Source of the DNA: Tubulanus polymorphus
Lineage: Eukaryota > Animalia > Nemertea
NCBI RefSeq assembly: GCF_964204645.1
Contig: NC_134032.1
Location: 14,992,275 to 15,056,274 of the forward strand
Reading direction: 5' to 3'
DNA length: 64,000 bases
Shown: one piece after another, positions 1 to 64,000 of the stretch
Position numbering within the stretch: the stretch's first letter is position 1
Layout: the number at the start of each line of letters is the position of its first letter
The notes under the pieces: model-generated
Database searches by the model: none
The model's input: the letters and a program-made list of their open reading frames with translations, nothing else
What the model was told of the DNA's origin: nothing
Made by a program: the position numbers and the translations under genes

Positions 1-83
1 TAAGCTACCAGGTAGTTTTTCTTTTTATTGTGGGTTTTTGTCTACTAATGATGATTTGCGAATGATTGTGATGATTGTTTCAG

Positions 84-4519: not shown

Positions 4520-5190
4520 TTAGGATCCGGTTCCACAGTCATGAGTTAGAGTTAACACTGAGTTAAAATTAGTTCATTTGACCTGAAATACCTCGATTTC
4601 TGAAAAACTCAGGGAATTGGACAAATTTTACTATAAACCTGGACCCAGTTCCACAGTCATGAGTTAGAGTTAACTCTGAGTTAAAATTAGTTCATTTTCA
4701 ATGTTTTAACCAAGAGTCAAATCTTAACTCAGAAATGTGGAACTGGACCAAGGATAGCATTATATATATATATGTTAGTTCATCAGGACCCAGTTCCACA
4801 GTTGTGAGTTAGAGTTAACTCTGAGTTAAAGTTAGTTCATTTTCAATGTTTTAACCCAGGGTCAAATCTTAACTCAGAATTGTGGAACTGGACCCTGGGG
4901 TCGGTTGCTCAAAAGTTGGTTAGAGTTAACCAGTGGTTAGTTGATATGGTGACAATTGAAATTTAATTGTTACTATGGTATTTAATGGCCGGTTATGTTT
5001 AACCAACTTTTCAGCAACCGGCCCCCGGAAAACTCAAGAATATAAATCCCACAATCACAAAGTAGAAAAACATAAAATGTCGAGAATTTTCGGTTTTAAA
5101 TTATTAGAATTAACTGAGTTAAAATAAGTTCATTTTCGATGAGTTAACTCAGTCAAATCTTAACTCACAACTGTGGAACCGGCTCCAGGG
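4520..5190. mobile_element. Cluster of short MITEs (ends GG(A)CCCAGTTCCACA..TGTGGAACTGGACC and GGGTCGGTTGCT..AGCAACCGGCCC); related copy at 50095-50181
   Basis: Short non-coding elements with terminal inverted repeats, at about 4641-4748, 4787-4895 and 4898-5024. Confidence 0.7.
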
Positions 5191-5289
5191 AATTTGACAA
5201 ATTTTACCAAAAACCCGGAATAACTCAAGAATATAAATCTTATTAAATATCGAGAATTTTCGGTTTTAAATTATTAGAATTATTTTCAG

Positions 5290-5567
5290 ATTCAGTACAA
5301 TTTACGGCTACACAACGAAAACTGGATCGGAGTTGAAAAATAGAAATCAAACTGGACACACAGGAGGAGGAGGAGAAGAAGGAGGAATAGAAGCAGAAGG
5401 AGTAGAGGAGTTGAGTACCGATCGTGAGATAGCTCGCAGTCTGTTAGATCTAGCGAAACGAGGAGACTCCGTTAAAAAATCATCATCGATTCCTTCTGCT
5501 GCAGTCGCCGTGGCGATACAACAACAGAACGTCGTCATCGACGACAATGAAACCGACGAACAAAAAG
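5290..5567 (+). CDS. shn: Schnurri exon, FSTIYGYTTK...EIARSLLDLAKR...DEQK
   Basis: ttttcag| acceptor and |gtggcg donor; frame matches ORF 5333. Confidence 0.8.
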
Positions 5568-5646
5568 GTGGCGCTTCGAGGAATTTTATTCGAAAAAAAA
5601 AAACGATTTAAATTTCGATCAAAAATTTTCCGCGTCTTTGTTTCAG

Positions 5647-5840
5647 GAAATCGGCTGGATACTCTGATCGGGGCGCTGATGTCCCGAACTCATCCTCCCG
5701 ACGCCGCGGCAACGACAACAATGAGCCTACCGACCAGCAGTTACCAAGACAACGATGGACCGAAAAAAGTATCGAAAAGGCCGCAGCAGGAAAATGTCTC
5801 TGCGACGACTGGGACGGAATATCTCGAGAAGTCATCTCCA
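5647..5840 (+). CDS. shn: Schnurri exon, NRLDTLIGALMSR...EKSSP
   Basis: tttcag| acceptor and |gtaaga donor; phase 1 in, phase 0 out, consistent with its neighbours. Confidence 0.8.
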
Positions 5841-5889
5841 GTAAGAGATTGCTGCTGACATCTAGTGGGGTAGCTCGTGGGCGCCATCT

Positions 5890-6215
5890 AGTGGGCCCCT
5901 GGTGGTCCTCACTTGCCACAAGTAGAATCTTGTATTGCCGCAGTAGTTGGTGTCCCACTAACACTAGCGACACCTGGTGGATCCTCACTTGCCACAAGTG
6001 GAATCCTCTCTTGCGGCAGTTGTTGATATCCCAATACGCACTAGCGACACCTGGTGGATCCTCACTTGCCACAAGTAGAATCCTCTATTGCCGCAGTTGT
6101 TGATATCCCAATACCCACTAGCGACACCTGGTGGATCCTCACTTGCCACAAGTAGAATCCTCTATTGCCGCAGTAATTGTTGTCCCACTCTAACTAGCGA
6201 CACCTGGTGGATGTT
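5890..6215. repeat. Intronic 77-bp tandem repeat carrying a CTCF-like motif; dispersed copy at 20790-20850
   Basis: ctagcgacacctggtgga at 5964, 6041, 6118, 6195 and 20791. Confidence 0.85.
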
Positions 6216-6260
6216 AGAATCCTCATTATTTTTGAATGAAAGTCGAATGTTTAATTTCAG

Positions 6261-9200
6261 ATTTCGTCTGTAACCACGGAAACGGAACCAGCTCTATCGA
6301 TATTTGGCAGACGAACGTACGCTCAGAAAATCGCCGCACTTCAAAACGCCTACGAAAAAGATCTGAAATCGTATCTATCGAGTCGCCATAGCAACAGCAC
6401 GACTAGTTCCGGGTTCGTACCGCCCGTATTGTCGAGCAACAATACCGGTGAGCCCTCGTCGTTACCGGTGGCAACCAGTTCAGTATCGGTGGACTCAATG
6501 GAAGTATCAACGTTTACGGAGTCGGTTGAATCAACGTCGAGTTGCTCGGCAACAATGACTGCATTGTTACCGGTCGTCAAGCAGGCTCAGTCGGTGCCGA
6601 CACAGATTAGATATATGTCGTCTGCGAACGTGAAACACGGTCAAAAACGGAAACTGAGTTCGGAACTTAACGAAATGGGTGGCTCCAAACTACAGCGGGT
6701 TGACTCCAAACTACAGAGGAATGACTCCGAGAAGATTCACTCGGATAGAATTGACTCCAAATCGATAGGGACTGACTCCAACTCAAAGGGAAATGACTCC
6801 TCTATTGAAATGACTATTGACTCCTCGTCTGAGACTCCTCAGTCTCAGACTTTAATGCTCGCTATGGTTAAAGGTCAACCGGTGCTGATGTTAGCTCCGG
6901 CGGCGTCCAGCATGAACGCCTCTGCCGGAGTCACCCAATCCCGGCCGCTTGTCACTCCAACGGAGTCATCCATAAAACTAAACGTTGTCATGCCGAAAAC
7001 AACACCGGCGCCATCTACGAGCAATCGCAAACGACAGAAACCGCAGTCGCTCGGACGCAGCGTTTCTTCATCCGGTGTCGGAGTGCAGAATCCGTCTGCT
7101 GCTCTGAGCGTCGGAGGTCGGACTCCGTCTGCCGCTCCAACCGTCGGAGCTCGGACTCCATCTGCCGCTCCAACTGTCGGAGCTCGGACTCCGTCTGCTG
7201 CTCCGACTGTTCTACTCGCGGCTGCATCCGCTCCAGTTGTACGACCTATAGCGCCACATAGCGGCGAGATTAAGCGTAGTATAAGCGTACCGACGATGAT
7301 GAGATTATCGTCGTCGCCAGGTGGCAGCACGTGTTCACCGAGCGGTACGAGTATAATCCACGCTACGAGTCAGAAACTAGCGTGTGGTTCAAACGTGATA
7401 ACGATTCCTTTATCAACGAACGTTGCTGCTGGAGGAGCTGCTGGAGTTACTCCGATTTCACTGAATTTAACTCCAACTCGTGCGAATTCTGTACCGAACT
7501 CAAAGAGTTCTCAAGCCGTATCGAGTCTTGGTGTTCTAAACTCAAAGAGTTCTCAAGTTGTATTGAGTCCCGGCGTTCTGAACGCAAAGAGTTCTCAAGC
7601 CGTATTGAGTCCTTGTGTTCTGAACTCAAAGAGTTCTCAAGTTGTATCGAGTCCCGGTGTTCTAAACTCAAAGAGTTCTCAAGCCGTATTGAGTCCCGGT
7701 GTTCTAAACTCAAAGAGTTCTCAAGCCGTATTGAGTCCTGGTGTTCTAAACTCAAAGAATTCTCAAGCCGTATTGAGTCCTGGCGTTCTAAACTCAAAGA
7801 GTTCTCAAGTTGTATTGAGTCCCGGTGTTCTGAACGCAAAGAGTTCTCAAGCCGTATTGAGTCCTGGTGTTCTGAACTCTAAGAGTTCTCAAGCCATATT
7901 GAATCCTGGTGTTCTGAACTCGAAGAGTTCTCAAGCCGTATTGAGTCCTGGTGTTCTAAACTCAAAGATTTCTCAAGCCGTATTGAATTCAGGCTCGGTA
8001 TCAAACTCAAAGAGTTCCAACGCGAAAGCGCCGATAGTTCCGCAAGTTGGAATCGCCTTCCTATCGAGCGGTGTCCCTGTTTTACTGCAAACCGGTTCCT
8101 ACGTGTCGTCGGCGCCGATTAGTGACACGGTGGCGCCCTCTCGTGGTGGAAGTGAAACTACCGTACCATCCGTTCAGTGGTTACCGAAAACCAGGGACCT
8201 TAAACAACCTCTTCCGGCTCAAGGTTACGTGGAGGACCTGTCTCCGACGAGTAAGTCGTTCGTCGTTAATCAGTTGTCTAAGCAACAGCAGCAACAATTG
8301 CAGAAATCTATTTCGACCGCTGCAGAGGAGAGCGATACGGAACAGGTGTCGCCGGGAGACGATAAACAATCAACGACGAAGAAACCCGTCGCCCAACAAC
8401 CGTTGTCAACGGCGACGATAACAAAACCCGTTACCCAGCAACCGTCGTCGACGGCGACATCGTCTAACAATATAAAATACGTGGAGGGTGAAAACAGCGC
8501 TCCGTTCGAGATCGTACCGATTCCCGGGAAGGTCGAGGATAATTCGAAGTCGCTAAAAGACGGTAAATACGTGTGTCACATCTGCGACAAATCGTTTAAC
8601 CAGGAACACCAACTGTCGCTTCATAAAAACATTCATTTCTTCGAGCGTCCGTATCGATGTGTCGAGTGCTCCATCTCGTTCCGCACGTACGGATTGTTAC
8701 AACGTCACCGTCGCTCGGAGATACACGCTACCAAGGCGACGGTGAACATGCAATACGGCGTACCGACGACCGATAACCCGCGTCCGTATCGGTGCGATAC
8801 GTGCGATATGGGCTTCCGTATTTACGGGCATCTCGCTAAACATCTACGCTCGAAATTACACGTGACGAAAGAATCGAATCCGGACGACGTCGATCGGCAG
8901 ACAGATATCTCGATCCCGCCGGATGATAATACTATATTCCGGTGCGCGGACTGTAAAGTGGATTTTACAGTTTTCACGTCGTACACGCGGCATTTACAAT
9001 CGAAACAACACGCTTCGAACGCGACGTCGCCCGCGACGAAGGAGACCGTTATAGGTGGCGCTGATAGCAGCGAGGACGGCGGCGAATCGGACAGTTCGTT
9101 AGACGGAGCGATCGCCATGTCGCCGGAGGAAGCTGCTCGATTGTATAAATGCGATTGTTGTAATACCGCGTACAGAGAACGAGAACAACTCGATAAACAT

Positions 9201-9476
9201 TTACGTTCAAGATTACATTCGGAAACTATCGAGAAATTGGGTCAAATCGAAGAAGGTGAAGGTCAAATCGAAGCAGACGAAGGTCGTATCGAAGCAGACG
9301 AAGGTCGTATCGAAGCAGATGAAGGTCAAAGCGAAGCAGACGATGGCGAGAATCTCGAGATTAACAACGACGTATCGACTGAGATTCAATCCGAGTTGGT
9401 AGAGGGCGCCGGTGAGTCGTCGAGACAGAAATGCGGATTATGCGGAGTCTCGTTCTCGTCTATAGATCAATTAAAG
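6261..9476 (+). CDS. shn: Schnurri large exon: Ser/Pro-rich region, C-terminal finger triplet and extra fingers
   Basis: tttcag| acceptor in frame with ORF 6429 and |gtaaaa donor. LHKNIHFFERPYRC..SISFRT..RSEIH..GVPTTDNPRPYRC..FRIYGHLAKHLRSKLH matches the Drosophila Shn zf6-8 triplet. Confidence 0.92.
7497..8020 (+). repeat. Coding 42-bp minisatellite, (NSKSSQAVLSPGVL) x~12
   Basis: Tandem aactcaaagagttctcaagccgtattgagtcc.. units in frame within shn. Confidence 0.95.
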
Positions 9477-9564
9477 GTAAAACACGGACGAAAAAGACGG
9501 TCTTGACAACCGGAGAAATTTGAAACCGATAATCAATTGTTGTTTTCCTGTTTTCTATTTGTAG

Positions 9565-11699: not shown

Positions 11700-13100
11700 G
11701 TGTACGGGACCCCTGTATCTATCCAGCATCAGCACCACTCAAAATCGGTGTCAGTAATTACTGGGTTCAAACCCGGGACACTCCTGTACAACCTCTATTC
11801 CGCATCAGGACCACTCTGAATCAGTATAAGTAATTACTGGGTTCGAACCTGGGACACCCCTGTACAACCTCTATTCCGCATCAGCACCACTCTGAATCAG
11901 TATCGGTAATTACTGGGTTCGAACCTGGGACACTCCTGTACAACCTCTATTCCGCATCAGGACCACTCTGAATCAGTATCAGTAATTACTGGGTTCGAAC
12001 CCGGGACACCCCTGTACATCCTCTATTCAGCATCTGCCATTCAGAATCAGTATCAGTAATTACTAGGTTCAACATTTCACCGTACGGTGCTGCCGCTATG
12101 CTCATCGTTGGCGGGATTTTCATACACTAACTACAGTCAACTCTGGCAATCGACGTGCTGTCTCAGTTACTCTGTAACCCTAGCTTGCCAGAGTTAACTT
12201 TTTTTAGTGTATGTAAATTCCGCCAACGATGGACATAGCGGCAGCACCTTACGGCAAAATAAGACAGTTATAATTGTTTTCATTATAGAATAACTATATC
12301 TGATTAGAAAACTTTATTTCAATCCAACAATTTGCATTGTACCCGAAGAGGCCGCGTACGAGATCCCTGTACATCCTCTATCCATCATCAGGACCACTCT
12401 GAATCAGTATCAGTACTGGATTCAGTGTCAGTAACTGTGTACACTCCTTGTACATCGTCTATTCAGCATCAGAACCACTCTGAATCAGTATCAGTAATTA
12501 CTGGATTCAGTGTCAGTAATAACCGTGTACATCCTCTATTCAGCATCAGGACCACTCTGAATCAGTATCAGTAATTACTGGATTCAGTGTCAGTAATAAC
12601 CGTGTACATCCTCTATTCAGCATCAGGACCACTCTGAATCAGTATCAGTAATTACTGGATTCAGTGTCAGTAATAACCGTGTACATCCTCTATTCAGCAT
12701 CAGGACCACTCTGAATCAGTATCAGTAATTACTGGATTCAGTGTCAGTAATAACCGTGTACATCCTCTATTCAGCATCAGGACCACTCTGAATCAGTATC
12801 AGTAATTACTGGATTCAGTGTCAGTAATAACCGTGTACATCCTCTATTCAGCATCAGGACCACTCTGAATCAGTATCAGTAATTACTGGATTCAGTGTCA
12901 GTAATAACCGTGTACATCCTCTATTCAACATCAGGACCACTCTGAATCAGTATCAGTAATTACTGGATTCGACCCCGGGACACCCCTGTACATCCTCTAT
13001 CCATCATCGACCACTCAGAATCAGGACTGGGTTCGAATCTGGGACACCCCTGTAGATCTGCTCTATTTGGCATCGGGACCACCCTGAGCCAGTGTTAATA
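11700..13100 (+). repeat. ~60-75-bp satellite with a B-box-like GGTTCGAACCC; also at 45010-45620 (-), 46175-46265 (-) and 51380-51580 (+)
   Basis: ctgtacatcctctattcagcatcaggaccactctgaatcagtatcagtaattactgg units. Confidence 0.85.
12079..12256. mobile_element. Fold-back palindromic element (~75-bp arms); second copy at 45979-46156
   Basis: ccgtacggtgctgccgctatg..aactctggcaa / ttgccagagtt..catagcggcagcaccttacgg. Confidence 0.8.
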
Positions 13101-24333: not shown

Positions 24334-25027
24334 CTGAAAGTATAGCAATCGAATTGGCCAAGCAACAAGGAGAGTCTGAACAAGGCTACGAGGCAGCTAC
24401 CCAACTATGGGAATCAGTAATCAGGTGTGCGAAGAAAATAAATCCCACCCCAAAGCTGTCTCAACAGCCTGAGGAGCCAGCTCCACGAACCCCTGAGTTG
24501 GCTCCTCCGCAGGTGGTGGACCCTGTTTCGCCGGTGCAGGTGGTTGCGCCCACCGTATCTTCGGATACGGAGGTCGCGCCGCCTGTTGCCCCGGAGCAGG
24601 AGGTCGCCCCTGCCGTGGTAGCCCCGACAGAGGCGCCACAGGTTCAGGCTCCTGGCCCGCGCAGATCGCCCCGGAAAAATCGGAAGGAGGTTGATTATAC
24701 CGGAGGTTCGGGGCGATCTACCCCTAAAAAAAGAAAACGTGCGGCTCCTCCCAACAGCCAGATACATCGGAGGAGTCGAGTGATGAGGAGTTGCCTACAG
24801 CTCCTAGAGCCTCACCGCCAGGGTCCTCACCACCAGCGCGACGACCAACACCACCAAAAACAACCGCTCCGGCGGGGGTAGAACCCTCCCCCGACGTAGA
24901 GCTCGTCGCGCGTGGCCCTGGCTGGTCAAGGATAATTGAGTTTGACGACCCAATTACCTTGCTCTGCGACGTCGAAGCGGCATTCCACGGGGAATACAAA
25001 TTTACCAAGCGGAGGAGAACACGTTGA
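24334..25027 (+). pseudogene. Exon for a Pro/Glu-rich, NLS-bearing protein, interrupted by one frameshift near 24725-24755
   Basis: ttttcatttcag| acceptor. GC-rich coding-like sequence with RRSPRK and PKKRKR continues in the -1 frame as QQPDTSEESSDEELPTAP...KRRRTR*. Confidence 0.5.
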
Positions 25028-44090: not shown

Positions 44091-47000
44091 ACATACGGAC
44101 ATCTTGTTTTGGGTGTGTCCTATGTCTGTGTTTGTTTATTACGACTTTGCGTTTTATCTTTTGTAAATAATTTTGTAAATAAATTCCTGCGTGTTTGCAC
44201 TACTTGAGAATTCATTACCGCATTTTTGGACTTCTGGAGAATCCTTTTGCATATTCGGACATCTTGTTTTGGTTGTGTCCTGGTCTTGACTTATGTCTGT
44301 GTTTGTTTATTTCGACTTTGCGTTTTATCTTTTGTAAATAAATGAGGTGTTGTATTTCACTGTTGAGGATGTAAAACTCAGATATTGACTTCATGCATCG
44401 AGGATATTCATAGACTGAGTACTGTTCACTGCTGCAGAGACTCATTCTATCTGTAATCGGAGTCACGACTTCTTGGGAATTCTTTTGTTTGACTTGAACA
44501 ACTTGTATCCGATAATGTTCAATTATATTATTATTTTGTTCTAATGAAAGTAAAACTGTTTAAATATCTTAGATCGTTTTATAAGTGTTGATGATGTTGT
44601 TTTGTGATGGAACTGATAATGTGCAGCACTCGGTTCCATAGTGTGTATTGTAACATGTTGTTAAGACTTTGCGTCTTCCCCTTGATTCATTCATTTTAAT
44701 TTCGGTCTATTTTTGTTTACTTGCGTTTTATGTTTGCGATTTAATAATTTTGCTGTAGTAAATTTCTATAAACTGATTTGTTTATGTTGTATCTCATTCT
44801 TGTTTTCCATCTGTTTGTGTTAATTACGTTTGATTTCTTCATTTTGATTTCTGTCTCTTGTGTTTTTATAAGTTGTGACTTTGCCTTAACTTGTTTATTT
44901 TTTTGTAAATGAATATTTATTTCATCTCATTGTTTGGGAAAGACAAAATTCGAACCGGTGATCAACCCGTGTGGTACAGAACATGCGGCATTCTTTACAA
45001 CCAGAGCAGACCTGATGCTGAATAGAGGATGTATAGGGGTGTCCCAGGTTCAAACCCAGTTATTACTGACACTGATTCAGAGTGGTCCTGATGCTGAATA
45101 GAGGATGGACAGGGGTGCCCCGAGTTCGAACCCAGTTATTACTGACACTGATTCAGAGTGGTCCTGATGGATGCTGAATAGAGGATGTACAGGGGTGTCC
45201 CAGGTGTGAACCCAGTAATTACTGACACTGATTCAGAGTGGTCCTGATGCTGAATAGAGGATGTACAGGGGTGTCCCAGGTTCGAACCCAGTAATAACTG
45301 CAATGATTCAGAGTGATCCTGATGCTGTATAGAGGATGTACAGGGGTGTCCCAGGTGTGAACCCAGTTTTTACTGACACTAAATCTGAGAGGTCCTGATG
45401 CTGAATAGAGGATGTCTAAGGGTGCCCCAGGTTGGAATCCAGTTATTACTGACACTTATTCAGAGTGGTCCTGATGCTGAATAGAGGATGTACAGGGTGT
45501 CCCGAACCCAGTATTTAATGACACTGAATCTGAGAGGTCCTGATGCTGAATAGAGGGTGCACCGGGTTGGAACCCGGACTATTAGTTCTGATTCCGAGTG
45601 GTCATGATGCTGATTAAAGGACATAGGTGAGTCGAATACGATTATTTATTACACTCCAACAATTTCCATGGAGGAAAAACAGTGGTATTTAACAATCATT
45701 TTCAAAAACAGGAAATAAAAATATTTCAAAACATAAATATTTAGCCAGTTTAAAAGTTGGATTTTTAAACATCAAGATTCCGAAAGGTATTTGAATTTAA
45801 GTAGTTTTTACGGAATTCAGGAAGTTACAGTAAAAAATGAAATGTAGTTCATCTCGCCTAAAACGTTACAGATGGGGCATAATCTATCGGTTCTCGGTAG
45901 ATGGAGATTTGACAATTTATTTACAGGTAGAGATAAGACCCAATCCTGAACTGAAATAAGCTGGTTACCAAATCACGGCCGTACGGTGCTGCCGCTATGT
46001 TCATCGTTAGCGGGATTTTCATACACTAACACAAGTCAACTCTGGCAATCGAAGTGCTGTCCAGTTATACACCGTGACCCTAGCATGCCAGAGTAGACTT
46101 ACCCTTAGTTTATGAAAATCTCGCTAACATTGAGCGTTGCGGCAGCACCGTACGGTGAAATATTGATATCTTAAAAGTAATTACTGTTCAGAGTGGTACT
46201 GATGTTGGAAAGAAGGTGTCCCGGGTTCGAATCAAATAATTACTGACACTGATTAAGAGTAGTCCTGGTGCAATGCAATGCAAATGTAATAATCGCAGTG
46301 CATTATTGGTATGTAGAGGATACAATATTTCATACAAAAATTTTCAAAATTGAAAAAATAAAAATCAACAATACCTGCATATAAACAAGAGATTAACGTA
46401 TTGCATCAAGAGAAACATTTGAGCATTTTGAGACCAACGTTAATAATAAATCTAGCTAACTTGAATGATACTGATGAATTCACAGAGTTTAGCATTTTAG
46501 CAGTATTTGGTCTATTTGAAAAGTATCAACGATTGCCGGATGTTACAAAGTTTGTTACATTGATATAAAAGATGAAATTCATCACCTATTTCGTTTGTAT
46601 TATTACAATGTGAGCAAAATCGCTCACTTCTAGGAATATCTCTGTTCCTACATTCATCTCTAAATCAGTCCAACAAGATACAAATAGTTCTCTTCTATAT
46701 AAGGCATTCGATTGTTATTAGAGTTGAGTAATTTCCAGATTTCTTCGGGTCTTTCATGTCACGTCATGATCTAATTAGTTCATCAATAAATTCGTTATCT
46801 GCCGTCTCTTATGTTTATTCATAGGTTTGTTTATATATTTTCCTTGGTCACTATAAGTATCTTAGTATATTATCACCAAGAAGTTTCTTTGTATTGTGAT
46901 TTTTTCAATTAGATTCTGGAAATTTACTTCGTTGATTGATATTCCCAGGGATGTACAGCGTTCGCCATCTATCGGATTTTCATTAAACTACACAATTTGT

Positions 47001-49011: not shown

Positions 49012-49751
49012 AGGTTTGAAATAGAACATTTTCCGACTCGACAGTCTGCGGTTTTCGATAAGTTTCCTCATTTTGCTTTTTAGATTTTTTCCATTCCCTG
49101 AAAATTATAGCATTTTATAACAAATTATAGACAATAGGCCTATCTTATATAGAATTGCCATTATTGATTGGGAAGGTATAAAAAAGCATAGCTTGTATTA
49201 TATACCAGCCCCACCGTCCCCCCCCCCCCCCCAAAAAAAAGTTATATAAATGTAAAGAAAAAAATATTCATCCACATTTTCATATACACTCTACAAAAAT
49301 GTACTATTTGAAAGAAAAACAACTTATTGGAAAATTCATAGGAAATTATACATAGTTCGTCTTAAATCAAATTAATAGGAAGTTCATAAACATTTTGTCT
49401 TTTGTAAAGCACAGCAATTATCTTATATAGTTCTGCACTACATATGCAAATGAATTATTATATTATCATCTTGTGCTCATTGTGGCTCCAGCTGTGACCT
49501 AGCTGATACATGGGGTGCGGGTGAGGATCCATCAAACACGCCAACCAGCTGTCTTTCTTTGGGCTGTCGATATCTGGAACTGAAAAAAATGACTTATTGC
49601 TGTGAGATGAAGGGAGTGAGTTTAACATAATCTATCCAATGCCAACTGCCTACCAACTGCCAATACTGCTTGAACGGTACTCAAGATTTCCCCCACAATA
49701 TAGACAATATTTGCCTGCATGTTTCTTAACACACAGATCAAGTCATATTAC

Positions 49752-49832: not shown

Positions 49833-50419
49833 CGACACGCTTGACTTGAAGCAACAATATGTCTTAGGCATTTTCTAGAAAAATAAAGAAAACTATGAAA
49901 TCATATGAAACTACATCAGACATGAGTTATGCACAGTTCAGTTGGAATGACTGTTCCCCGATTAGTTCCAGGTTGGCCTCCAGTTCTAGTTTGATGTTTT
50001 TCAGTACTGTGTGTGTTGGGTCTAAGCGATTTAACTGAATTTCATCTTTTAACCTTATCAACAGTGGGTTTGTTTTTTACTGTGGACTCTACTGGATCCA
50101 GTTCCACAGTAGGATAGATTAAATTTGACACTGGACTTACAGTTATGTTGATTTAACTCTTTAGTGGACAGGAACTGGGCCTCTTTCATTTCTGAATTCT
50201 GTTTCCCGCCCAGCATACTGGGTGTTGGCGCCTAAAAGTGCTCGCTCTGGGAGCTTATTGATGGCAGGCGATTGGAAAGGGGCCATCACCTTTGATCAAG
50301 ATTCCTAGAATGGTCTGAGCTTTAAAAAGTTAATTCGACTTCAATTTGTTATCTATAATTTGGCCGGGGTATGACGTTAAACTGCCCTGATTTTGAATTC
50401 ACTTTAGTCTATTTGGCAG

Positions 50420-50750: not shown

Positions 50751-52149
50751 AAATGTCGATTACTCAACACGAAGTCTGTGAAACGAATGATTCGATCAGC
50801 TGACCGCTGGTCACTGTCCAGTAACCCGCACCAGCCTCAACCAATCAACACGCGTATTCATACATTTCCCATTCAAAACCAGAAATGCAGATTACCAAAG
50901 CGGAAGTAGTACCTGTAGACTGGTTACCGGTCTGTAGGTGGCGCAGAATTTGACTAGACTGGTTACCTGTCCCATTCTAATAGACTGGTTGCCTGTCCCA
51001 TTCAATATCTAATTGAAGATAAAGACCGGCAACCAGTCTATTACTTACAATTGATCACCCTCGCTTGCCAGGGTCTGATTGCCGCTCGCCGGAGCTCATG
51101 CCACTTCAGTCCCTGGCCGCAAACCCCTTATTGGTCTATGCAACTTGATGCGTTGCTGGAAGTTGGAGGATTCGTGTGCGTTGCTGGAAGTTGGAGGATT
51201 CGTGTGCGTTGCTGGTGCTTGGAGAACTATTATGCGTGCTTGTTTAGTTCTAAGTCAGTTTTTTTTCAATTCTTGTGAATTCTTAAGAAATTTAATCAAG
51301 AAATTTGATATTCGTTTAATATGTATTGTGTCCCTTCGATTTACTGATGTTGTTAACCTTGTTCACCCTGTTGACGCCCTGTTCATCCTATCCTCTATTC
51401 AGCATCAGGACCACTCTAAATCAGCATCAGTTATTTCTGGGTTCGAACCCAGAAAACGTATGCACATCCTCTATACAACATCAGGACCACTCGGAACCAG
51501 CATCAGTAATTACTGAGTTCGAACCTGGGACACCCCTGTGCATCCTCTATACAGCATCAGGACCACTCTGCATCATTACTTATTACATTTAAAAAAAACC
51601 AGTTCTATTTTTTATTCCGGTAGATGGCATATTTGACAATGTGGTCAATATCAATTACTTCTTCCATCATGATAAGCACATACAACAGATTGAGAACTTT
51701 CAGAAGTTTTTCAATTGCATCTTACGACAAACTAGAACCGGAACTTTAACAAGTTTTTTTTTTCAAATGCATCATATACGACAGTTTGAGAACTATAAGT
51801 TCTTTGAATTGCATCTTACGACAGACTAGAACTTTTACAAGTTCTTTTTTCAAATGCATCATATACGACAGTTTGAGAACTTTAATAAGAACTTTGAGAA
51901 CTTTAGTCGTGGAACACGTCCATGCCGGGCCACCTCGCCGATATCACATTGTCTTAGGAATTTTTTTACAAAACTTAAAAGAAAACTATTAAATCATATG
52001 ATAATACAATATTATATCGGACATGATGGGCCTCCACTAAAGTCCACCATTCTGGCTTGCCAGATTTCATTTTCCTTTTTTACAAAATTATCTGATTCTG
52101 TTTATTTTTTCAAAATGAATTACCATGAAAGCAGTAAATTTGAACTTAC

Positions 52150-53401
52150 CTTTTCATATGGTCTTTTTCGACTACTTTTCTTTTTCGCTTTAGGCATCTA
52201 GAAAAATAAATGAAATTGTTAAATCATTTTAAATTACAATATTATCAGACATGAGTTATGCAGAGTTTAGTTACACCGGTCTGAGTTGTGTTACTGGTTG
52301 TAAGCTAATTTAAACAGTAAAGTCTTAAACACATTAGCAAAATGGACTAGTTACCGATTTAAACTTACTGGTTGGAACGACCGCTCACCTATCCGGTCCA
52401 AGTTGGCCTGTTGCTCGGCCCGCTCATTTAAATGCCGGCGTCTGGTTCGCTAGAAAAGAGTAAAAGTATTCATGCAATGACAACCAAACTGAACGACAGA
52501 TTTGATAAACAATTAGTATCATCTATACATCATTTTACAGAATATTGATATTTAGTGGAACGATACACTTTGCCGATCCACAACAATTTCACCAACATTA
52601 TCTTAAATTTCTTTTCTTTTTTTTTGGATTTTCGTAAGCAATTCGAATGAAAAAGAAATGGTCTATTTAGACTCGGTATTTAACATGGATGGTATGAATA
52701 AATCAATATATTGATACAACTATGTACAAAATAGTGTCGGTCACCGTTAAGAAGAATTGGGCCATTAAATTTGAACTTACAGGACTGTAAGGTGAAGACA
52801 TGGCCGCTGGGCCACCCTTCCACAATCTTCGTGTTTTTGGCATTTTTGCTGAGCTTCTTTCAATAAAAGCTTGGTCTGTTTCATTAAGACGTTTAAAGTT
52901 GATTTTTATTTGTGGGCTCTTGATCTGATAAATCAAATCAATGTTTATGATGAGGGGTATCTGAAAACTTACTCCCTTGTGCGCCGAAATAGGCTCGTGT
53001 TTAATTGTCTTTAAAAATAGAGAATAGAAAAATACTTGAATCAAACTATAGTTCATTTAACTATAGAACCAACGGGGTCTAGAGAGATTTTACTGAAAAC
53101 TTGGTCTCTCGTTGGGAACCATCTTATTTCCTTTTTCATTTAGTATCTAATTTAATTATCATCAGGATCTCGCACAATTTGATGCAGTTCTCCGGTTTAT
53201 GGCGTGATGCCAAGTGTTGAAATTCAATATTTCTATTGGTTCAACAAAATTCTTCCTAACGCGGAACCTTTTCATAATTAAGCTACAGCTTGATGTTATA
53301 GCTATATAGAAAGATAGCTAGTAGTTTCGCATGTTCAGGACTTTACTGATACTTGTACTTACAGCAGTAGTTAACGGAGATACTGACATCGACTTTGAAC
53401 T
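52150..53401 (-). CDS. Chain of phase-0 exons of an unknown basic protein: 53401-53363, 53008-52973, 52924-52781, 52449-52369, 52197-52150
   Basis: Each exon is bounded by AG and GTAAGT; lengths are 39/36/144/81/48 nt, all stop-free in phase 0. Confidence 0.55.
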
Positions 53402-56183
53402 CTAGAAAAGACAACAATATAATAACTTTTATTTTCCCTCGAATTACAACACGATTATACATAAACACATCAGTCAAATTCACTAAGGGTTGAATTTTCA
53501 AACTTCTTTATTCCGAGGTTAAAGGAGGAAGTTTTGAAATCAGCAGTAGAATTGTAGAGAAGATAAAATGAGTTAAAAATGATAAAAAATATAAATTTAC
53601 AGAACACAATTTTAAGTTACTGAGGCCGAGTAGCTGGATTTGAGATCCGTCCAGTTGCTTCCCTGCTCATGTCGGTTATCAACTGCACCGGCTCAGATGG
53701 CCAAATGATGGACATTTTGAGAATAGACCTAAATTATTACGAACAAATATATTTCTTGTCGCTAGTCGGCTTATGTCGAACCAATAGAGCAGCAACTGGC
53801 GGCCTCTCGTAGGCCACTAGTTGCCACTAATCGGCGATAAACCCTGTTGCGTCAGTAGGCGTCAGTCGCTTGTCGAATCTATTATCAGTTAGATAATTCA
53901 CTGAAACTGGCTTAGACCCACTGTACTTAAAAACATCAAACTAGAATTATTATAACTTACTGGTGACAACCTTTCAAAAGGCGTTGGCACGCGCGCGTGG
54001 CCAAATTCTGGGCCGGAGGATAGGTGTTCTAGAAAAAATGAAATTATTTCATATAAATGAAAAATATACAAATTTACAGAACACAATTTCATGCTACAAT
54101 CAGGCCACAGAGTGAGTTATATTGAATATTCATATCAAATCTATCTAAACTTGTCAGTGAGATGAACTGTAAGCATTCATCTACTGTAAAGGCCCCCCAC
54201 AGACACTAGGGGAATTGAGACGCTGAAAATTCATGTCTTAAGATGTGTCTGTTACTACAACTTAGTTGTTTGATTTAACGAGGGAATTCCATAAACTAAC
54301 AAAAAAGGAATAATCAGCTTGAACCGCGGTCTTTTTCTAGAACTCTTCTTTTTAGCTTTAGGCATCTAGAAAAATAAATGAAATTGTTAAATCATTTTAA
54401 ATTACAATATTATCAGACATGAGTTATGCAGAGTTTAGTTACACCGGTCTGAGTTGTGTTACTGGTTGTCAGCTAATTTAAACAGTAAAGTCTTAAACAC
54501 ATTAGCAAAGTGGACTAGTTACCGATTTAAACTTACTGGTTGGAACGACCGCTCTCCTATCCGGTCCAAGTTGGCCTGTTGCTCGGCCCGCTCATTTAAA
54601 TGCCGGCGTCTGGTTCGCTAGAAAAGAGAAAGTATTCACGCAATGACAACCAAACATTTGATAAACAATTAGTATCATCTATACATCATTTTACAGAATA
54701 TTGATATTTAGTGGAACGATACACTTTGCCGATCCACAACAATTTCACCAACATTATCTTAAATTTCTTTTCTTTTTTTTTTGATTTTCGTAAGCAATTC
54801 GAATGAAAAAGAAATGGTCTATTTAGACTCGGTATTTAACATGGATGGTATGAATAAATCAATATATTGATACAACTATGTACAAAATAGTGTCGGTCAC
54901 CGTGGAGAAGAATTGGGCCATTAAATTTGAACTTACAGGACTGTAAGGTGAAGACATGGCCGCTGGGCCACCCTCCCACAATCTTCATTAATTCGTATTT
55001 CAACTCTTTAATTTGTATTTCAAATTAATGAAAAATATTTAGTTAAAATCACACTTTATACTGATACCCAATAAACCACTGACTGATGCAAAATATCGAG
55101 AGTAAAATTATAACTTGCGTGTCTTATGGGTGGAGACGGCAATGCTGATTTCATTGAACATAGTTCAGGTATGTGTCCTGTCAGCTATGCGTCAATCTAT
55201 GGGTTATATCTAGCTTATCAAAGGCAGGTGATTGGAAAGGTTCCATCACACACTCTCCTTTGATAAGTTTCCTAGAGTGTCTGGGCTTTAAAGGGTTACT
55301 TGGACTTTGATTTTTACCTTTGAGTTGTCCTGGGGATGACTTTAAATTGCCCTCATTTTAAACTGGATACTGGGCGTGAAATTTATTAGAGGTTGAATTT
55401 TCAAACATCTTTATTCGGAGGTTAAGAATTTCGAAGTCAGCAGTAAAATTCTAGAAATGATAAAATAAGTTCAAAATAATGAAAAATATGAATATCACCG
55501 TTTAAAATTTAAGGAACCTCTTTTTAAGCTACAATCGGGCTGCATTTTCCGTGTGAGAAACTGTTCTTCTTGTAGAGTGGAATTCTAGAAAATATAAAAT
55601 GATTTATAAAATTGATGAAATGTGACTAAGTTTTCTTACAGAAATCCATAATTTAAGGTGCCTTTGTGAAACGTATGTTTTTTCGATTACATAAATTAAA
55701 TCAATGTTTATGATGAGGGGTATCTGAAAACTTACTTGTGCGCCGAAATAGGCTCGTGTTTAATTGTCTTTAAAAATAGAGAATAGAAAAATACTTGAAT
55801 CAAACTATAGTTCATTTAACTATAGAACCAACGGGGTCTAGAGAAATTTTACTGAAAACTTGGTCTCTCGTTGGGAACCAACTTATTTCCTTTTTCATTT
55901 AGTATCTAATTTAATTATCATCAGGATCTCGCACAATTTGATGCAGTTCTCCGGTTTATGGCGTGATGGAAAATTCATAGAAAGTTATACATAGTTCGTC
56001 TTAAATCAAATTAATAGGAAGTTCATAAACATTTTGTCTTTTGTAAAGCACAGCAATTATCTTATATAGTTCTGCACTACATATGCAAATGAATTATTAT
56101 ATTATCATCTTGTGCTCATTGTGGCTCCATCTGTGCCCTAGCTGATACATGGGGCGCGGGCGAGGATCCATCAAACACACCCA

Positions 56184-57125
56184 TCAGCTGTCTTTCTTCG
56201 GGCTGTTCCCTATGTCAGGGTTCTCTAGTCGTGGAACACGTCCATGCCGGGCCACCTCGCCGATATCACATTGTGTTAGGCATTTTTTACAAAACTTAAA
56301 AGAAAACTATTAAATCATATGATAATACAATATTATATCGGACATGATGGGCCTCCACTAAAGTCCACCATTCTGGCTTGCCAGATTTCCTTTTCCTTTT
56401 TTACAAAATTATCTGATTCTGTTTATTTTTTTCAAAATGAATTACGATGAAAGCAGTAAATTTGAACTTGCCTTTTCATATGGTCTTTTTCGACTACTTT
56501 TCTTCTTCGCTTTAGGCATCTAGAAAAATAAATGAAATTATTAAATCATTTTGAAATACAATATTATCAGACATGAGTTATGCAGAGTTTAGTTACACTG
56601 GTCTGAGTTGTGTTACTGGTTGTCAGCTAATTTAAACAGGAAAGTCTTAAACACATTATTAGCAAAATGGACTAGTTACCGATTTAAACTTACTGGTTGA
56701 AACGACTGCTCTCCTATCCGGTCCAAGTTGGCCTGTTGCTCGGCCCTCTCATTTAAATGCCGGCGTCTGGTTCGCTAGAAAAGAGAAAGTATTCACGCAA
56801 AGACAACCAAACTGAACGACAGAATTGATAAACAATTAGTATCATCTATACATCATTTTACAGAATATTGATATTTAGTGGAACGATACACTTTGCCGAT
56901 CCACAACAATTTCACCAACATTATCTTAAATTTCTTTTCTTTTTTTTTTGGATTTTCGTAAGCAATTCGAATGAAAAAGAAATGGTCTATTTAGACTCGG
57001 TATTTAACATGGATGGTATGAATAAATCAATATATTGATACAACTATGTACAAAATAGTGTCGGTCACCGTGGAGAAGAATTGGGCCTTTAAATTTGAAC
57101 TTACAGGACTGTAAGGTGAAGACAT
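56184..57125 (-). CDS. Predicted 86-aa basic protein, copy 1 (exons 57125-57105, 56774-56694, 56519-56472, 56294-56184)
   Basis: gcggccATG start and phase-0 introns (third donor is GC-AAGT), intact to TGA. The terminal exon is the least certain. Confidence 0.5.
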
Positions 57126-58355
57126 GGCCGCTGGGCCACCCTCCCACAATCTTCATTAATTCGTATTTCAACTCTTTAATTTGTATTTCAAATTAATGAA
57201 AAATATTTAGTTAAAATCACACTTTATACTGATACCCAATAAACCACTGACTGATGCAAAATATCGAGAGTAAAATTATAACTTGCGTGTCTTATGGGTG
57301 GAGACGGCAGTGCTGATTTCATTGAACATAGTTCAGGTATGTGTCCTGTCAGCTATGCGTCAATCTATGGGTTATATCTAGCTTATCAAAGGCAGGTGAT
57401 GGGAAAGGTGCCATCACACACTCTCCTTTGATAAGTTTCCTAGAGTGTCTGGGCTTTAAAGGGTTACTTGGACTTTGATTTTTACCTTTGAGTTGTCCTG
57501 GGGATGACTTTAAATTGCCCTCATTTTAAACTGGATACTGGGCGTGAAATTTATTAGAGGTTGAATTTTCAAACATCTTTATTCGGAGGTTAAGAATTTC
57601 GAAGTCAGCAGTAAAATTCTAGAAAAGATAAAATAAGTTCAAAATAATGAAAAATATGAATATCACCGTTTAAAATTTAAGGAACCTCTTTTTAAGCTAC
57701 AATCGGGCTGCATTTTCCGTGTGAGAAACTGTTCTTCTTGTAGAGTGGAATTCTAGAAAATATAAAATGATTTATAAAATTGATGATATGTGACTAAGTT
57801 TTCTTACAGAAATCCATAATTTAAGGTGCCTTTGTGAAACGTATGTTTTTTCGATTACATAAATCAAATCAATGTTTATGATGAGGGGTATCTGAAAACT
57901 TACTCCCTTGTGCGCCGAAATAGGCTCGTGTTTAATTGTCTTTAAAAATAGAGAATAGAAAAATACTTGAATCAAACTATAGTTCATTTAACTATAGAAC
58001 CAACGGGGTCTAGAGAGATTTTACTGAAAGCTTGGTCTCTCGTTGGGAACCATCTTATTTCCTTTTTTATTTAGTATCTAATTTAATTATCATCAGGATC
58101 TCGCACAATTTGATGCAGTTCTCCGGTTTATGGTGTGATGGAAAATTCATAGAAAGTTATACATAGTTTGTCTTAAATCAAATTAATAGGAAGTTCATAA
58201 ACATTTTGTCTTTTGTAAAGCACAGCAATTATCTTATATAGTTCTGCACTACATATGCAAATGAATTATTATATTATCATCTTGTGCTCATTGTGGCTCC
58301 ATCTGTGCCCTAGCTGATACATGGGGCGCGGGCGAGGATCCATCAAACACGCCCA

Positions 58356-59300
58356 TCAGCTGTCTTTCTTCGGGCTGTTCCCTATGTCAGGGTTCACTAG
58401 TCGTGGAACACGTCCATGCCGGGCCACCTCGCCGATATCACATTGTGTTAGGCATTTTTTACAAAACTTAAAAGAAAACTATTAAATCATATGATAATAT
58501 AATATTATATCGGACATGATGGGCCTCAACTAAAGTCCTCCACTAAAGTCCACCATTCTGGCTTGCCAGATTTCATTTTACTTTTTTTTTAAATTATCTG
58601 ATTCTGTTTATTTTTTCAAAATGAATTACCATGAAAGCAGTAAATTTGAACTTACCTTTTCATACGGTCTTTTTCTAGAACTCTTCTTTTTAGCTTTAGG
58701 CATCTAGAAAAATAAATGAAATTATTAAATCATTTTGAAATACAATATTATCAGACATGAGTTATGCAGAGTTTAGTTACACCGGTCTGAGTTGTGTTAC
58801 TGGTTGTCAGCTAATTTAAACAGGAAAGTCTTAAACACATTATTAGCAAAATGGACTAGTTACCGATTTAAACTTACTGGTTGAAACGACTGCTCTCCTA
58901 TCCGGTCCAAGTTGGCCTGTTGCTCGGCCCTCTCATTTAAATGCCGGCGTCTGGTTCGCTAGAAAAGAGTGAAAGTATTCACGCAATGACAACCAAACAT
59001 TTGATAAACAATTAGTATCATCTACACATCATTTTACAGAATATTGATATTTAGTGGAACGATACACTTTGCCGATCCACAACAATTTCACCAACATTAT
59101 CTTAAATTTCTTTTCTTTTTTTTTGGATTTTCGTAAGCAATTCGAATGAAAAAGAAATGGTCTATTTAGACTCGGTATTTAACATGGATGGTATGAATAA
59201 ATCAATATATTGATACAACTATGTACAAAATAGTGTCGGTCACCGTGGAGAAGAATTGGGCCATTAAATTTGAACTTACAGGACTGTAAGGTGAAGACAT
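58356..59300 (-). CDS. Predicted 86-aa basic protein, copy 2 (exons 59300-59280, 58958-58878, 58703-58656, 58466-58356)
   Basis: Same structure with all GT-AG introns; differs from copy 1 mostly at synonymous sites. Confidence 0.55.
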
Positions 59301-62300
59301 GGCCGCTGGGCCACCCTCCCACAATCTTCATTAATTCGTATTTCAACTCTTTAATTTGTATTTCAAATTAATGAAAAATATTTAGTTAAAATCACACTTT
59401 ATACTGATACCCAATAAACCACTGACTGATGCAAAATATCGAGAGTAAAATTATAACTTGCGTGTCTTATGGGTGGAGACGGCAGTGCTGATTTCATTGA
59501 ACATAGTTCAGGTATGTGTCCTGTCAGCTATGCGTCAATCTATGGGTTATATCTAGCTTATCAAAGGCAGGTGATGGGAAAGGTGCCATCACACACTCAC
59601 CATTGATAAGTTTCCTAGAGTGTCTGGGCTTTAAAGGGTTACTTGGACTTTGATTTTTACCTTCAAGTTGTCCTGGGGATGACTTTAAATTGCCCTCATT
59701 TTAAACTGGATACTGGGCGTGAAATTTATTAGAGGTTGAATTTTCAAACATCTTTATTCGGAGGTTAAGAATTTCGAAGTCAGCAGTAAAATTCTAGAAA
59801 TGATAAAATAAGTTCAAAATAATGAAAAATATGAATATCACCGTTTAAAATTTAAGGAACCTCTTTTTAAGCTACAATCGGGCTGCATTTTCCGTGTGAG
59901 AAACTGTTCTTGTAGAGTGGAATTCTAGAAAATATAAAATGATTTATAAAATTGATGAAATGTGACTAAGTTTTCTTACAGAAATCCATAATTTAAGGTG
60001 CCTTTGTGAAACGTATGTTTTTTCGATTACATAAATCAAATCAATGTTTATGATGAGGGGTATCTGAAAACTTACTCCCTTATGCGCCGAAATAGGCTCG
60101 TGTTTAATTGTCTTTAAAAATAGAGAATAGAAAAATACTTGAATCAAACTATAGTTCATTTAACTATAGAACCAACGGGGTCTAGAGAAATTTTACTGAA
60201 AACTTGGTCTCTCGTTGGGAACCAACTTATTTCCTTTTTCATTTAGTATCTAATTTAATTATCATCAGGATCTCGCACAATTTGATGCAGTTCTCCGGTT
60301 TATGGCGTGATGCCAAGTGTTGAAATTCAATATTTCTATTGGTTCAACAAAATTCTTCCTAACGCGGAACCTTTTCATAATTAAGCTACAGCTTGATGTT
60401 ATAGCTATATAGAAAGATAGCTAGTAGTTTCGCATGTTCAGGACTTTACTGATACTTGTACTTACAGCAGTAGTTAACGGAGATACTGACATCGACTTTG
60501 AACTCTAGAAAAGACAACAATATAATAACTTTTATTTTCCCTCGAATTACAACACGATTATACATAAACACATCAGTCAAATTCACTAAGGGTTGAATTT
60601 TCAAACTTCTTTATTCCGAGGTTAAAGGAGGAAGTTTTGAAATCAGCAGTAGAATTGTAGAGAAGATAAAATGAGTTAAAAATGATAAAAAATATAAATT
60701 TACTGAACACAATTTTAAGCTACTGAGGCCGAGTAGCTGGATTTGAGATCCGTCCAGTTGCTTCCCTGCTCATGTCGGTTATCAACTGCACCGGCTCAGA
60801 TGGCCAAATGATGGACATTTTGAGAATAGACCTAAATTATTACGAACAAATATATTTCTTGTCGCTAGTCGGCTTATGTCGAACCGATAGAGCAGCAACT
60901 GGCGGCCTCTCGTAGGCCACTAGTTGCCACTAATCGGCGATAAACCCTGTTGCGTCAGTAGGCGTCAGTCGCTTGTCGAATCTATTATCAGTTAGATAAT
61001 TCACTGAAACTGGCTTAGACCCACTGTACTTAAAAACATCAAACTAGAATTATTATAACTTACTGGTGACAACCTTTCAAAAGGCGTTGGCACGCGCGCG
61101 CGGCCAAATTCTGGGCCGGAGGATAGGTGTTCTAGAAAAAATGAAATTATTTCATATAAATGAAAAATATACAAATTTACAGAACACAATTTCATGCTAC
61201 AATCAGGCCACAGAGTGAGTTATATTGAATATTCATATCAAATCTATCTAAACTTGTCAGTGAGATGAACTGTAAGCATTCATCTACTGTAAAGGCCCCC
61301 CACAGACACTAGGGGAATTGAGACGCTGAAAATTCATGTCTTAAGATGTGTCTGTTACTACAACTTAGTTGTTTGATTTAACGAGGGAATTCCATAAACT
61401 AACAAAAAAGGAATAATCAGCTTGAACCGCGGTCTTTTTCTAGAACTCTTCTTTTTAGCTTTAGGCATCTAGAAAAATAAATGAAATTGTTAAATCATTT
61501 TAAATTACAATATTATCAGACATGAGTTATGCAGAGTTTAGTTACACCGGTCTGAGTTGTGTTACTGGTTGTAAGCTAATTTAAACAGTAAAGTCTTAAA
61601 CACATTAGCAAAATGGACTAGTTACCGATTTAAACTTACTGGTTGGAACGACCGCTCTCCTATCCGGTCCAAGTTGGCCTGTTGCTCGGCCCGCTCATTT
61701 AAATGCCGGCGTCTGGTTCGCTAGAAAAGAGAAAGTATTCACGCAATGACAACCAAACATTTGATAAACAATTAGTATCATCTACACATCATTTTACAGA
61801 ATATTGATATTTAGTGGAACGATACACTTTGCCGATCCACAACAATTTCACCAACATTATCTTAAATTTCTTTTCTTTTTTTTTGGATTTTCGTAAGCAA
61901 TTCGAATGAAAAAGAAATGGTCTATTTAGACTCGGTATTTAACATGGATGGTATGAATAAATCAATATATTGATACAACTATGTACAAAATAGTGTCGGT
62001 CACCGTGGAGAAGAATTGGGCCATTAAATTTGAACTTACAGGACTGTAAGGTGAAGACATGGCCGCTGGGCCACCCTCCCACAATCTTCATTAATTCGTA
62101 TTTCAACTCTTTAATTTGTATTTCAAATTAATGAAAAATATTTAGTTAAAATCACACTTTATACTGATACCCAATAAACCACTGACTGATGCAAAATATC
62201 GAGAGTAAAATTATAACTTGCGTGTCTTATGGGTGGAGACGGCAATGCTGATTTCATTGAACATAGTTCAGGTATGTGTCCTGTCAGCTATGCGTCAATC

Positions 62301-64000
62301 TATGGGTTATATCTAGCTTATCAAAGGCAGGTGATGGGAAAGGTGCCATCACACACTCACCATTGATAAGTTTCCTAGAGTGTCTGGGCTTTAAAGGGTT
62401 ACTTGGACTTTGATTTTTACCTTCAAGTTGTCCTGGGGATGACTTTAAATTGCCCTCATTTTAAACTGGATACTGGGCGTGAAATTTATTAGAGGTTGAA
62501 TTTTCAAACATCTTTATTCGGAGGTTAAGAATTTCGAAGTCAGCAGTAAAATTCTAGAAATGATAAAATAAGTTCAAAATAATGAAAAATATGAATATCA
62601 CCGTTTAAAATTTAAGGAACCTCTTTTTAAGCTACAATCGGGCTGCATTTTCCGTGTGAGAAACTGTTCTTCTTGTAGAGTGGAATTCTAGAAAATATAA
62701 AATGATTTATAAAATTGATGAAATGTGACTAAGTTTTCTTACAGAAATCCATAATTTAAGGTGCCTTTGTGAAACGTATGTTTTTTCGATTACATAAATC
62801 AAATCAATGTTTATGATGAGGGGTATCTGAAAACTTACTCCCTTGTGCGCCGAAATAGGCTCGTGTTTAATTGTCTTTAAAAATAGAGAATAGAAAAATA
62901 CTTGAATCAAACTATAGTTCATTTAACTATAGAACCAACGGGGTCTAGAGAAATTTTACTGAAAACTTGGTCTCTCGTTGGGAACCAACTTATTTCCTTT
63001 TTCATTTAGTATCTAATTTAATTATCATCAGGATCTCGCACAATTTGATGCAGTTCTCCGGTTTATGGCGTGATGCCAAGTGTTGAAATTCAATATTTCT
63101 ATTGGTTCAACAAAATTCTTCCTAACGCGGAACCTTTTCATAATTAAGCTACAGCTTGATGTTATAGCTATATAGAAAGATAGCTAGTAGTTTCGCATGT
63201 TCAGGACTTTACTGATACTTGTACTTACAGCAGTAGTTAACGGAGATACTGACATCGACTTTGAACTCTAGAAAAGACAACAATATAATAACTTTTATTT
63301 TCCCTCGAATTACAACACGATTATACATAAACACATCAGTCAAATTCACTAAGGGTTGAATTTTCAAACTTCTTTATTCCGAGGTTAAAGGAGGAAGTTT
63401 TGAAATCAGCAGTAGAATTGTAGAGAAGATAAAATGAGTTAAAAATGATAAAAAATATAAATTTACAGAAGACAATTTTAAGCTACTGAGGCCGAGTAGC
63501 TGGATTTGAGATCCGTCCAGTTGCTTCCCTGCTCATGTCGGTTATCAACTGCACCGGCTCAGATGGCCAAATGATGGACATTTTGAGAATAGACCTAAAT
63601 TATTACGAACAAATATATTTCTTGTCGCTAGTCGGCTTATGTCGAACCGATAGAGCAGCAACTGGCGGCCTCTCGTAGGCCACTAGTTGCCACTAATCGG
63701 CGATAAACCCTGTTGCGTCAGTAGGCGTCAGTCGCTTGTCGAATCTATTATCAGTTAGATAATTCACTGAAACTGGCTTAGACCCACTGTACTTAAAAAC
63801 ATCAAACTAGAATTATTATAACTTACTGGTGACAACCTTTCAAAAGGCGTTGGCACGCGCGCGCGGCCAAATTCTGGGCCGGAGGATAGGTGTTCTAGAA
63901 AAAATGAAATTATTTCATATAAATGAAAAATATACAAATTTACAGAACACAATTTCATGCTACAATCAGGCCACAGAGTGAGTTATATTGAATATTCATA

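Follow-up and report, generated by a model that had tools for sequence, protein, structure and literature searches.

In gibbon L/M opsins, silent sites of the paralogues diverge by 6% and the introns by 0.5–1.3%, with a replacement divergence of 3.6% (PMC3213168, Hiwatashi et al., 2011), and the exon-2 repeats of SmPoMuc, like the silk genes of spiders, retain their exon variants although the repeats that carry them are homogenised (PMC2576457, Roger et al., 2008). The locus described here, a tandem array of micro-exons in a stretch of 64,000 nucleotides (nt; hereafter the window, C8:14,992,275-15,056,274 of a 268-Mb, 77-contig animal assembly), shows the histories of exons and introns separated to an extreme degree, at a scale of 50–80 nt: silent divergence of its exons is about 10 times that of the adjacent introns, and replacement divergence is close to that of the introns. 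On balance, we favour reading the array as the recent product of tandem amplification, starting from a rearranged cassette of an orphan gene family whose introns are renewed by gene conversion and whose old exon variants survive and recombine. An initial annotation of the window had proposed a tandemly amplified gene, with exons of 36, 81 and 48 nt, encoding a small basic protein of 86 amino acids (aa) under purifying selection. By itself, that claim amounts to one more orphan tandem gene, unproven, and the divergence pattern matters more.

The repeated exons are referred to as E1 (66 nt where complete), E2 (81 nt) and E3 (48 nt), followed in some units by a terminal exon, E4. Divergence of E1, E2 and E3 was taken by position and is free of the bias introduced by peptide-pattern searches. 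Within the array, introns differ by 1.1–2.3%, replacement sites by 2.4% and silent sites by 19–20%. Ordinary purifying selection leaves replacement divergence below silent divergence, and silent divergence about equal to that of introns; the proposal that the copies are now under such selection finds no support on either count, since replacement divergence is not below that of the introns and silent divergence is far above it. The comparison of the 10 E2 copies with their introns thus upheld the silent bias but not a replacement rate lower than intron divergence. Nine silent and three replacement changes distinguish these 10 copies (p = 3.5e-4) in the proposed frame only, against two silent and nine replacement changes in the other frames within the array; with the paralogue outside the array included, the counts are 18 silent and seven replacement (p = 9e-7), and the other two frames are reversed. 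Confinement of the silent bias to the proposed frame indicates that E2 and E3 are, or were, coding exons.

In the window, all three copies of E3 (52150-52197, 56472-56519 and 58656-58703, minus strand) follow a TTTTTCTAG acceptor and encode the same 16 residues, differing at the six codons named in the initial annotation, every change being silent. Their acceptors were as described, but the donor after the 56472 copy is GC, not GT. The five 81-nt copies in the window likewise carry the silent changes reported for them and a further one in an Arg codon; the single replacement among them is R/Q. An excess of silent over replacement changes among tandem copies can come from old exon lineages and is then uninformative on present function. 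Here the same silent variants occur in broken units and replacement divergence is about that of the introns, which implies that the selection signal was inherited from older exon lineages. The silent bias is a record of past selection on the family, not of the present function of each copy.

The contrast is deepest against the related locus at C8:15.80 Mb (L020), where intron 1 differs from the array at 20–22 of about 320 sites (6.5%), whereas about 67% of silent sites (23 of about 35) differ in E1 and E2 together, with only two to four residue changes in each (Fisher p = 2e-15 for exon-silent versus intron sites). It recurs in three tandem 66-nt exons of another locus (L030), in which four to seven of 16 silent sites differ and the 108-nt introns differ at one base (25–44% versus 1%), and in modules of 72 and 45 nt, whose silent sites differ by 17% and whose flanks differ by about 1%. 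In long exon parts of this module system the excess is absent (about 2%). For L030 and for the 72-nt and 45-nt modules, the searches by peptide pattern favour conserved residues, which lowers the replacement figures and cannot raise silent over intron divergence.

Changes at four-fold exon sites are rich in transversions, as at saturation (9/11), and those in introns are rich in transitions (14/22; p = 0.026). The exons are also richer in CpG than the introns, with a GC content of 0.46–0.72 at four-fold sites against 0.28 in introns, as expected if hypermutation restricted to exons, such as decay of methylated CpG, were filtered by purifying selection. This explanation is nevertheless highly improbable, because the changes are mostly transversions, long GC-rich exon parts lack the excess, and broken copies do not gather replacements and stops at the raised rate that it predicts. 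Alternatively, the introns might not be young but strongly conserved, for micro-exon splicing or as an RNA or DNA element, so that silent sites would give the true age. Micro-exon flanks are conserved in other animals, and the exon-adjacent flanks are the most invariant parts across the families seen here. Such constraint would have to be extreme, holding 108-nt AT-rich introns at 99% and 320 nt at 93.5% beside near-saturated silent sites; Rfam gave no match, and the flanks turn abruptly into unrelated sequence between loci, so we regard this as improbable too.

The array and its exons within the window are as follows (all positions are those of the window).

51901-64000, continuing to about C8:15,069,000, minus strand: tandem array of 2.2-kb (A) and 2.8-kb (B) units
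59280-59300, minus strand: E1 tail, seven codons from the previously proposed Met to a GT donor, no acceptor
58878-58958, minus strand: E2, 81 nt, phase 0, AG and GT intact
58656-58703, minus strand: E3, 48 nt, phase 0, K/R-rich, a short MPK-type module, codon variant B
58356-58466, minus strand: E4, apparently chimeric terminal exon
57105-57125, minus strand: E1 tail of the second model-compatible unit
56694-56774, minus strand: E2 of the second model-compatible unit
56472-56519, minus strand: E3, codon variant A, followed by a GC donor
56184-56294, minus strand: E4 of the second model-compatible unit
52781-52846, minus strand: E1, full 22 codons, MPK start kept, without the family acceptor
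52369-52449, minus strand: E2 copy
52150-52197, minus strand: E3, codon variant A, GT donor
51901-51973, minus strand: E4 copy, cut short where the array ends and carrying an extra A
62040-62060 and 54937-54957, minus strand: E1 tail of B units
61640-61720 and 54537-54617, minus strand: E2 of B units
61431-61468 and 54328-54365, minus strand: E3 interrupted by the duplication junction at codon 13 and deprived of its donor
61064-61131, 53961-54028 and 63827-63894, minus strand: micro-exon B1
60466-60504, 53363-53401 and 63229-63267, minus strand: micro-exon B2, 39 nt, phase 0

With the window stitched to the next 18 kb, 10 E1-E2-E3 units were counted over about 25 kb, past the window end. Tandem amplification, as claimed, is thus evident, in an array larger than had been proposed and with eight of its 10 units broken for the 86-aa model. 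Repeat blocks are 94–99.5% identical, the majority at least 97%, which is the copy identity of an ampliconic array, and introns differ by 1–2% between units. Four units are of type A and run on into E4; in the six of type B, the duplication junction cuts E3 at codon 13 and the micro-exons B1 and B2 follow, both of which were absent from the gene model first proposed. B1 measures 68 nt in every array copy, one base short of phase 0, and its paralogues measure 60 and 63 nt. DNA sequencing runs from two samples cover the array, the tandem junction being seen in one of them, which shows that it is not an assembly artefact. Variants in the second individual are haplotypes already in the assembly and were not counted as new evidence. 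Between B1 and B2, the B unit also carries a high-copy dispersed repeat (window 60676-61011), whose depth in the DNA runs is 20–60 times that of its surroundings.

Breakage falls into overlapping classes: E3 cut and without donor (six units), an E2 donor that now reads AT (three units), a stop in E3 (one unit) and an extra A in two of the four E4 copies. Just two units, with starts at 59300 and 57125, are compatible with the 86-codon model, their pieces being open and summing to 86 codons. The two intact units reported earlier therefore have open pieces, but one of them needs the GC donor and the E4 acceptor is cryptic. A mainly pseudogenic array is the likeliest case; the 86-aa product could come from two units at the most and would then be a new chimera of shuffled modules.

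Three further features bear on the two ends of this model.

59370-59403, minus strand: TATA-like box and initiator (Inr)-like TCATT, found in 0.3% of dinucleotide shuffles
49328-49579, minus strand: paralogue of the 3′ part of E4, with its own acceptor
49860-49943, minus strand: relic MPK-type acceptor and first codons

The 36-nt first exon of the model could not be sustained. A polypyrimidine acceptor is missing before this E1 tail in 10 of 10 units; the tail is the 3′ portion of a 66-nt MPK-type exon, an intact copy of which, normal acceptor included, lies 0.75 Mb away in L020, where the proposed Met aligns to Thr. One array unit still keeps the coding part of the 66-nt E1 (52781-52846). An extended E1 of 144 nt at 52781-52924, with 78 nt in frame upstream, was rejected: the other copy is frameshifted and no paralogue was found. 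Eight units have lost the 5′ part of E1 and carry in its place AT-rich DNA with a TATA-like box at −103 from the ATG and the Inr-like motif at the canonical 31-nt spacing; an out-of-frame ATG lies at −31. The motif pair is a possible captured promoter, a weak and post hoc candidate.

As for E4, 81 of 108 bases align with the L020 exon of this type and its upstream intron. The original AG of E4 is now AA and its original frame contains a stop; the acceptor of the proposed model is a cryptic AG 8 nt upstream of the lost one and shifts the frame. The 3′ part belongs to a different module, whose paralogue at 49.3–49.6 kb differs silently at four of the first codons in the proposed frame and has TGG at the position of the array's stop. 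Across all E4 comparisons, six of 10 changes are silent in that frame (p = 0.02), and the 6-A run that keeps it open is of ancestral length. E4 is, as judged from these alignments, a chimera with partial frame support, its 5′ start apparently a re-framed relic of an MPK-type exon. The idea that the whole of E4 is an off-frame shadow of such an exon was dropped because the 49.5-kb paralogue favours the proposed frame throughout the 3′ part and shows the 6-A run to be the ancestral state.

Two units with open frames and usable splice sites, TATA and Inr-like motifs that stand at the canonical distance from each other ahead of a Met in good context, the ancestral 6-A run and the silent bias in the 3′ part of E4 (p = 0.02) are what one would expect of a functional ampliconic gene that was newly built from family modules, provided with a captured promoter and encodes an 86-aa basic nuclear (germline) protein. 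We consider such a gene unlikely in view of the eight broken units, the upstream out-of-frame ATG, the cryptic acceptor and the GC donor. No conserved AATAAA was found after the E4 stop, the E4 copies of the two open units differ solely by one replacement, and no RNA contig lies on the exons. The composition of the product is not protamine-like either. A small 86-aa product is further placed in doubt by the paralogous loci, where the modules are internal parts of longer micro-exon chains.

The modules belong to a wider family. A single module, consisting of MPK, a basic stretch and then SPY, recurs in different versions as E1, as E3 and at the beginning of E4. Its donor-side motif occurs at 90 genomic sites, all of them within three clusters close to contig ends:

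C3 0.40-1.31 Mb; C6 0.67-1.74 Mb; C8 15.0-16.3 Mb: MPK clusters

Introner elements were considered for this motif and rejected, as all 90 sites fall within the three clusters and follow MPK-type exons wherever readable. Among distinct candidate exons in the 200 kb that were read, 62 of 79 have lengths that are multiples of three (p = 2e-16); they mostly code for Pro/Ser/Thr/Arg-rich peptides and reuse a few shared intron flanks in varying orders, and many family copies have stops, frameshifts or lost splice sites. The picture resembles that of an orphan gene family whose members are born, shuffled and lost at a rapid pace. E2 is found at 11 sites genome-wide, namely the 10 array units and L020. 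The E1-E2-E3 order exists outside the array in L020, with remnants in another locus (L018), where three MPK-type starts also stand in series without introns and with stops between them (L018:5011-5177, plus strand). L020 contains four consecutive phase-0 exons of 66, 81, 54 and 51 nt with intact splice sites (L020:5119-8060, plus strand) and is, to judge from these intact exons, the best candidate for a functional member and for the source of E1-E2. The family product would be a longer disordered, basic, phosphorylatable nuclear protein and not a protamine.

At two loci (L027:2738-2857 and L028:2671-2790, both minus strand), an MPK exon is joined exactly and in frame to a poly-Gln exon that also occurs separately nearby. 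This apparent exact intron loss hints at a complementary DNA (cDNA) step and suggests that the two exons were once spliced together. Less clear MPK fusions were seen in L023, L024, L031 and L032. In C6:1.06-1.74 Mb and C3:0.40-0.73 Mb, the donor motifs of MPK exons stand at intervals of 33–45 kb, often as divergent minus/plus pairs 7–9 kb apart, forming large tandem segmental units. Further micro-exon-like modules lie upstream of the array (L014:5600-10000, minus strand), with a long 31-nt satellite in between.

Protein searches were run exon by exon, E3 (16 aa) being too short for them. A profile of E2 against 1.84 billion representatives returned two repetitive chance matches only, two longer exons of the same module system had no protein match, and nothing above the cut-off was found in Pfam for E1, E2, E4 or related exons; the Atlas search gave nothing usable. 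These are, as the initial annotation supposed, true spliceosomal micro-exons with a frame once under selection, from a lineage-specific amplified family with no detectable homologue. Neither a Crypton DUF3504 recombinase nor a Polinton PolB was seen in the three clusters among the matches listed, which are best candidates only; intron-split genes can be missed. Genome-wide, more than 100 matches to protein-primed (Polinton-like) PolB were obtained, mostly mid-contig, with none listed in the three micro-exon clusters.

The history that we favour would start from an orphan multi-copy family of symmetric (phase-0) micro-exons encoding short, basic, Ser/Thr-Pro-rich, probably disordered nuclear modules. 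Ectopic conversion and unequal crossing-over among clustered copies would keep resetting the introns, while exon variants would resist replacement and recombine only through short identical cores. The array would be a late amplification that carried several old exon variants along, and this inheritance would explain why broken units show the same silent bias. Within the 81 nt of E2, 12 incompatible site pairs attest to mosaicism, and a recombinant exon in the L030 triplet and mixed A/B units in the array are other signs of exchange. In the comparison with L020, nine of 22 residual intron differences lie within about 30 nt of exons (post hoc p = 4e-4), a concentration expected if conversion tracts end there.

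Several observations weigh against this history. The introns of L030 are identical up to the exon edges. Exons with identical peptides differ at five to six silent codons (E3 variants A and B; the first and third exons of L030; the first 13 codons of B1-type exons), and selection on peptide differences cannot directly protect such pairs, although most diverged exon pairs do differ, by two to four residues. Such variants could arise as mosaics of lineages that differ elsewhere in the exon, together with a mismatch barrier, and nucleotide-level selection or RNA templating could also account for them. Transcription offers a further, weak negative. No run recorded as RNA contains the array stretch; runs X1–X3 behave as DNA, and the only RNA-like run (X4) has one contig, on a dispersed repeat, with none on any exon and no splice joint. 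As X4 is of unknown tissue, this result speaks neither for nor against germline expression.

The peptide-identical variants with many silent differences are what would be predicted if silent divergence were itself selected, with exons of a selfish or germline-active family recoded to escape small RNAs and introns exempt because small RNAs target spliced mRNA, or if exons were overwritten from cDNA of diverged members with introns inherited vertically. In both versions, exons would be driven apart at silent sites and introns copied unchanged. Forty-six genomic matches to the MPK core, several of whose third positions have all four bases with almost no mismatch to the peptide pattern (a result that the pattern itself favours), agree with this, and the precise in-frame MPK fusion in L027 and L028 suits cDNA-mediated intron loss. 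One E2 haplotype in which the donor G has become A, the first base of the next exon, is a weak further indication. No E2 donor copy exists beyond the 11 known sites; the rise of intron differences near exon edges in L020 is not predicted by cDNA overwriting; and no transposase, recombinase or polymerase among the best-scored candidates is tied to the clusters. We regard recoding or overwriting as possible but clearly the less probable account, and retain young amplification with renewed introns as the preferred one.

The locus allows a direct test, through its peptide-identical variants, of diversifying selection on synonymous sites (for example by PIWI-interacting RNAs), and also of whether mismatch alone shields an exon from conversion. 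Genome-wide "synonymous recoding", if true, would be a mode for which no description in animals was found within the literature searched.

The remainder of the window is satellite-rich. Two long C2H2 open reading frames of 1145 and 1025 aa, with paired zinc fingers, occupy its start (38-9506, plus strand), the second containing coding tandem repeats of 11 and 14 aa; from its domain layout, we take this gene to be Schnurri/HIVEP-like. A 76–77-nt minisatellite family is present in both orientations (window 11718-13024, 45002-45621 and 51390-51578). A long Pro-rich exon-like stretch at 24334-25027 (plus strand), with an acceptor, one frameshift and a basic C-terminus, had no homologue in our searches and also occurs, with MPK-type exons, within 2.7-kb tandem units at C8:15.16 Mb and 16.33 Mb.

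Four kinds of known system come closest to the array. A histone H1-type domain is expected of PL-I sperm nuclear basic proteins. The 86-aa model resembles sperm nuclear basic proteins in its small size, K/R clusters and SP sites, but differs from them in having no histone H1 domain and in its composition (24% K+R, 13% R, 10% D+E); the idea of a sperm protein finds no support. Canonical protamines are arginine-rich and very basic in composition (PMC12216123). Similar to the micro-exon genes (MEGs) of schistosomes, the family has conserved intron flanks and micro-exons whose symmetry allows skipping or shuffling with the frame preserved. The exons of MEGs, as DeMarco and colleagues are said to have described in 2010, are reportedly mostly 36 nt or shorter, with secreted products and a replacement excess; here the exons are 27–120 nt long (most 39–81 nt) and silent changes exceed replacements. 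The array shares with SmPoMuc of Schistosoma mansoni and spider Flag its lineage-specific multi-copy short-exon genes, tandem units of exon plus intron, many pseudogenes, introns more than 93% identical, and exon variants that are kept and exchanged by ectopic recombination. Different from those expressed secreted glycoproteins or fibres, its modules are basic, nuclear localization signal-like and SP/TP-rich, are known from genomic sequence, and showed no hydrophobic leader when the exons read were inspected by eye. Like the primate L/M opsins, the family has tandem paralogues with conversion-homogenised introns and a silent divergence above that of introns (5–13 fold in opsins), but in the opsins the selected residues are known, whereas here silent divergence reaches 67%, replacement divergence is about that of introns, exons measure 45–81 nt and some variants are peptide-identical. 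The mode of old exons in young introns was therefore already known, and what is new here is its near-saturation depth, its 48–81-nt scale and its peptide-identical variants with five to six silent differences.

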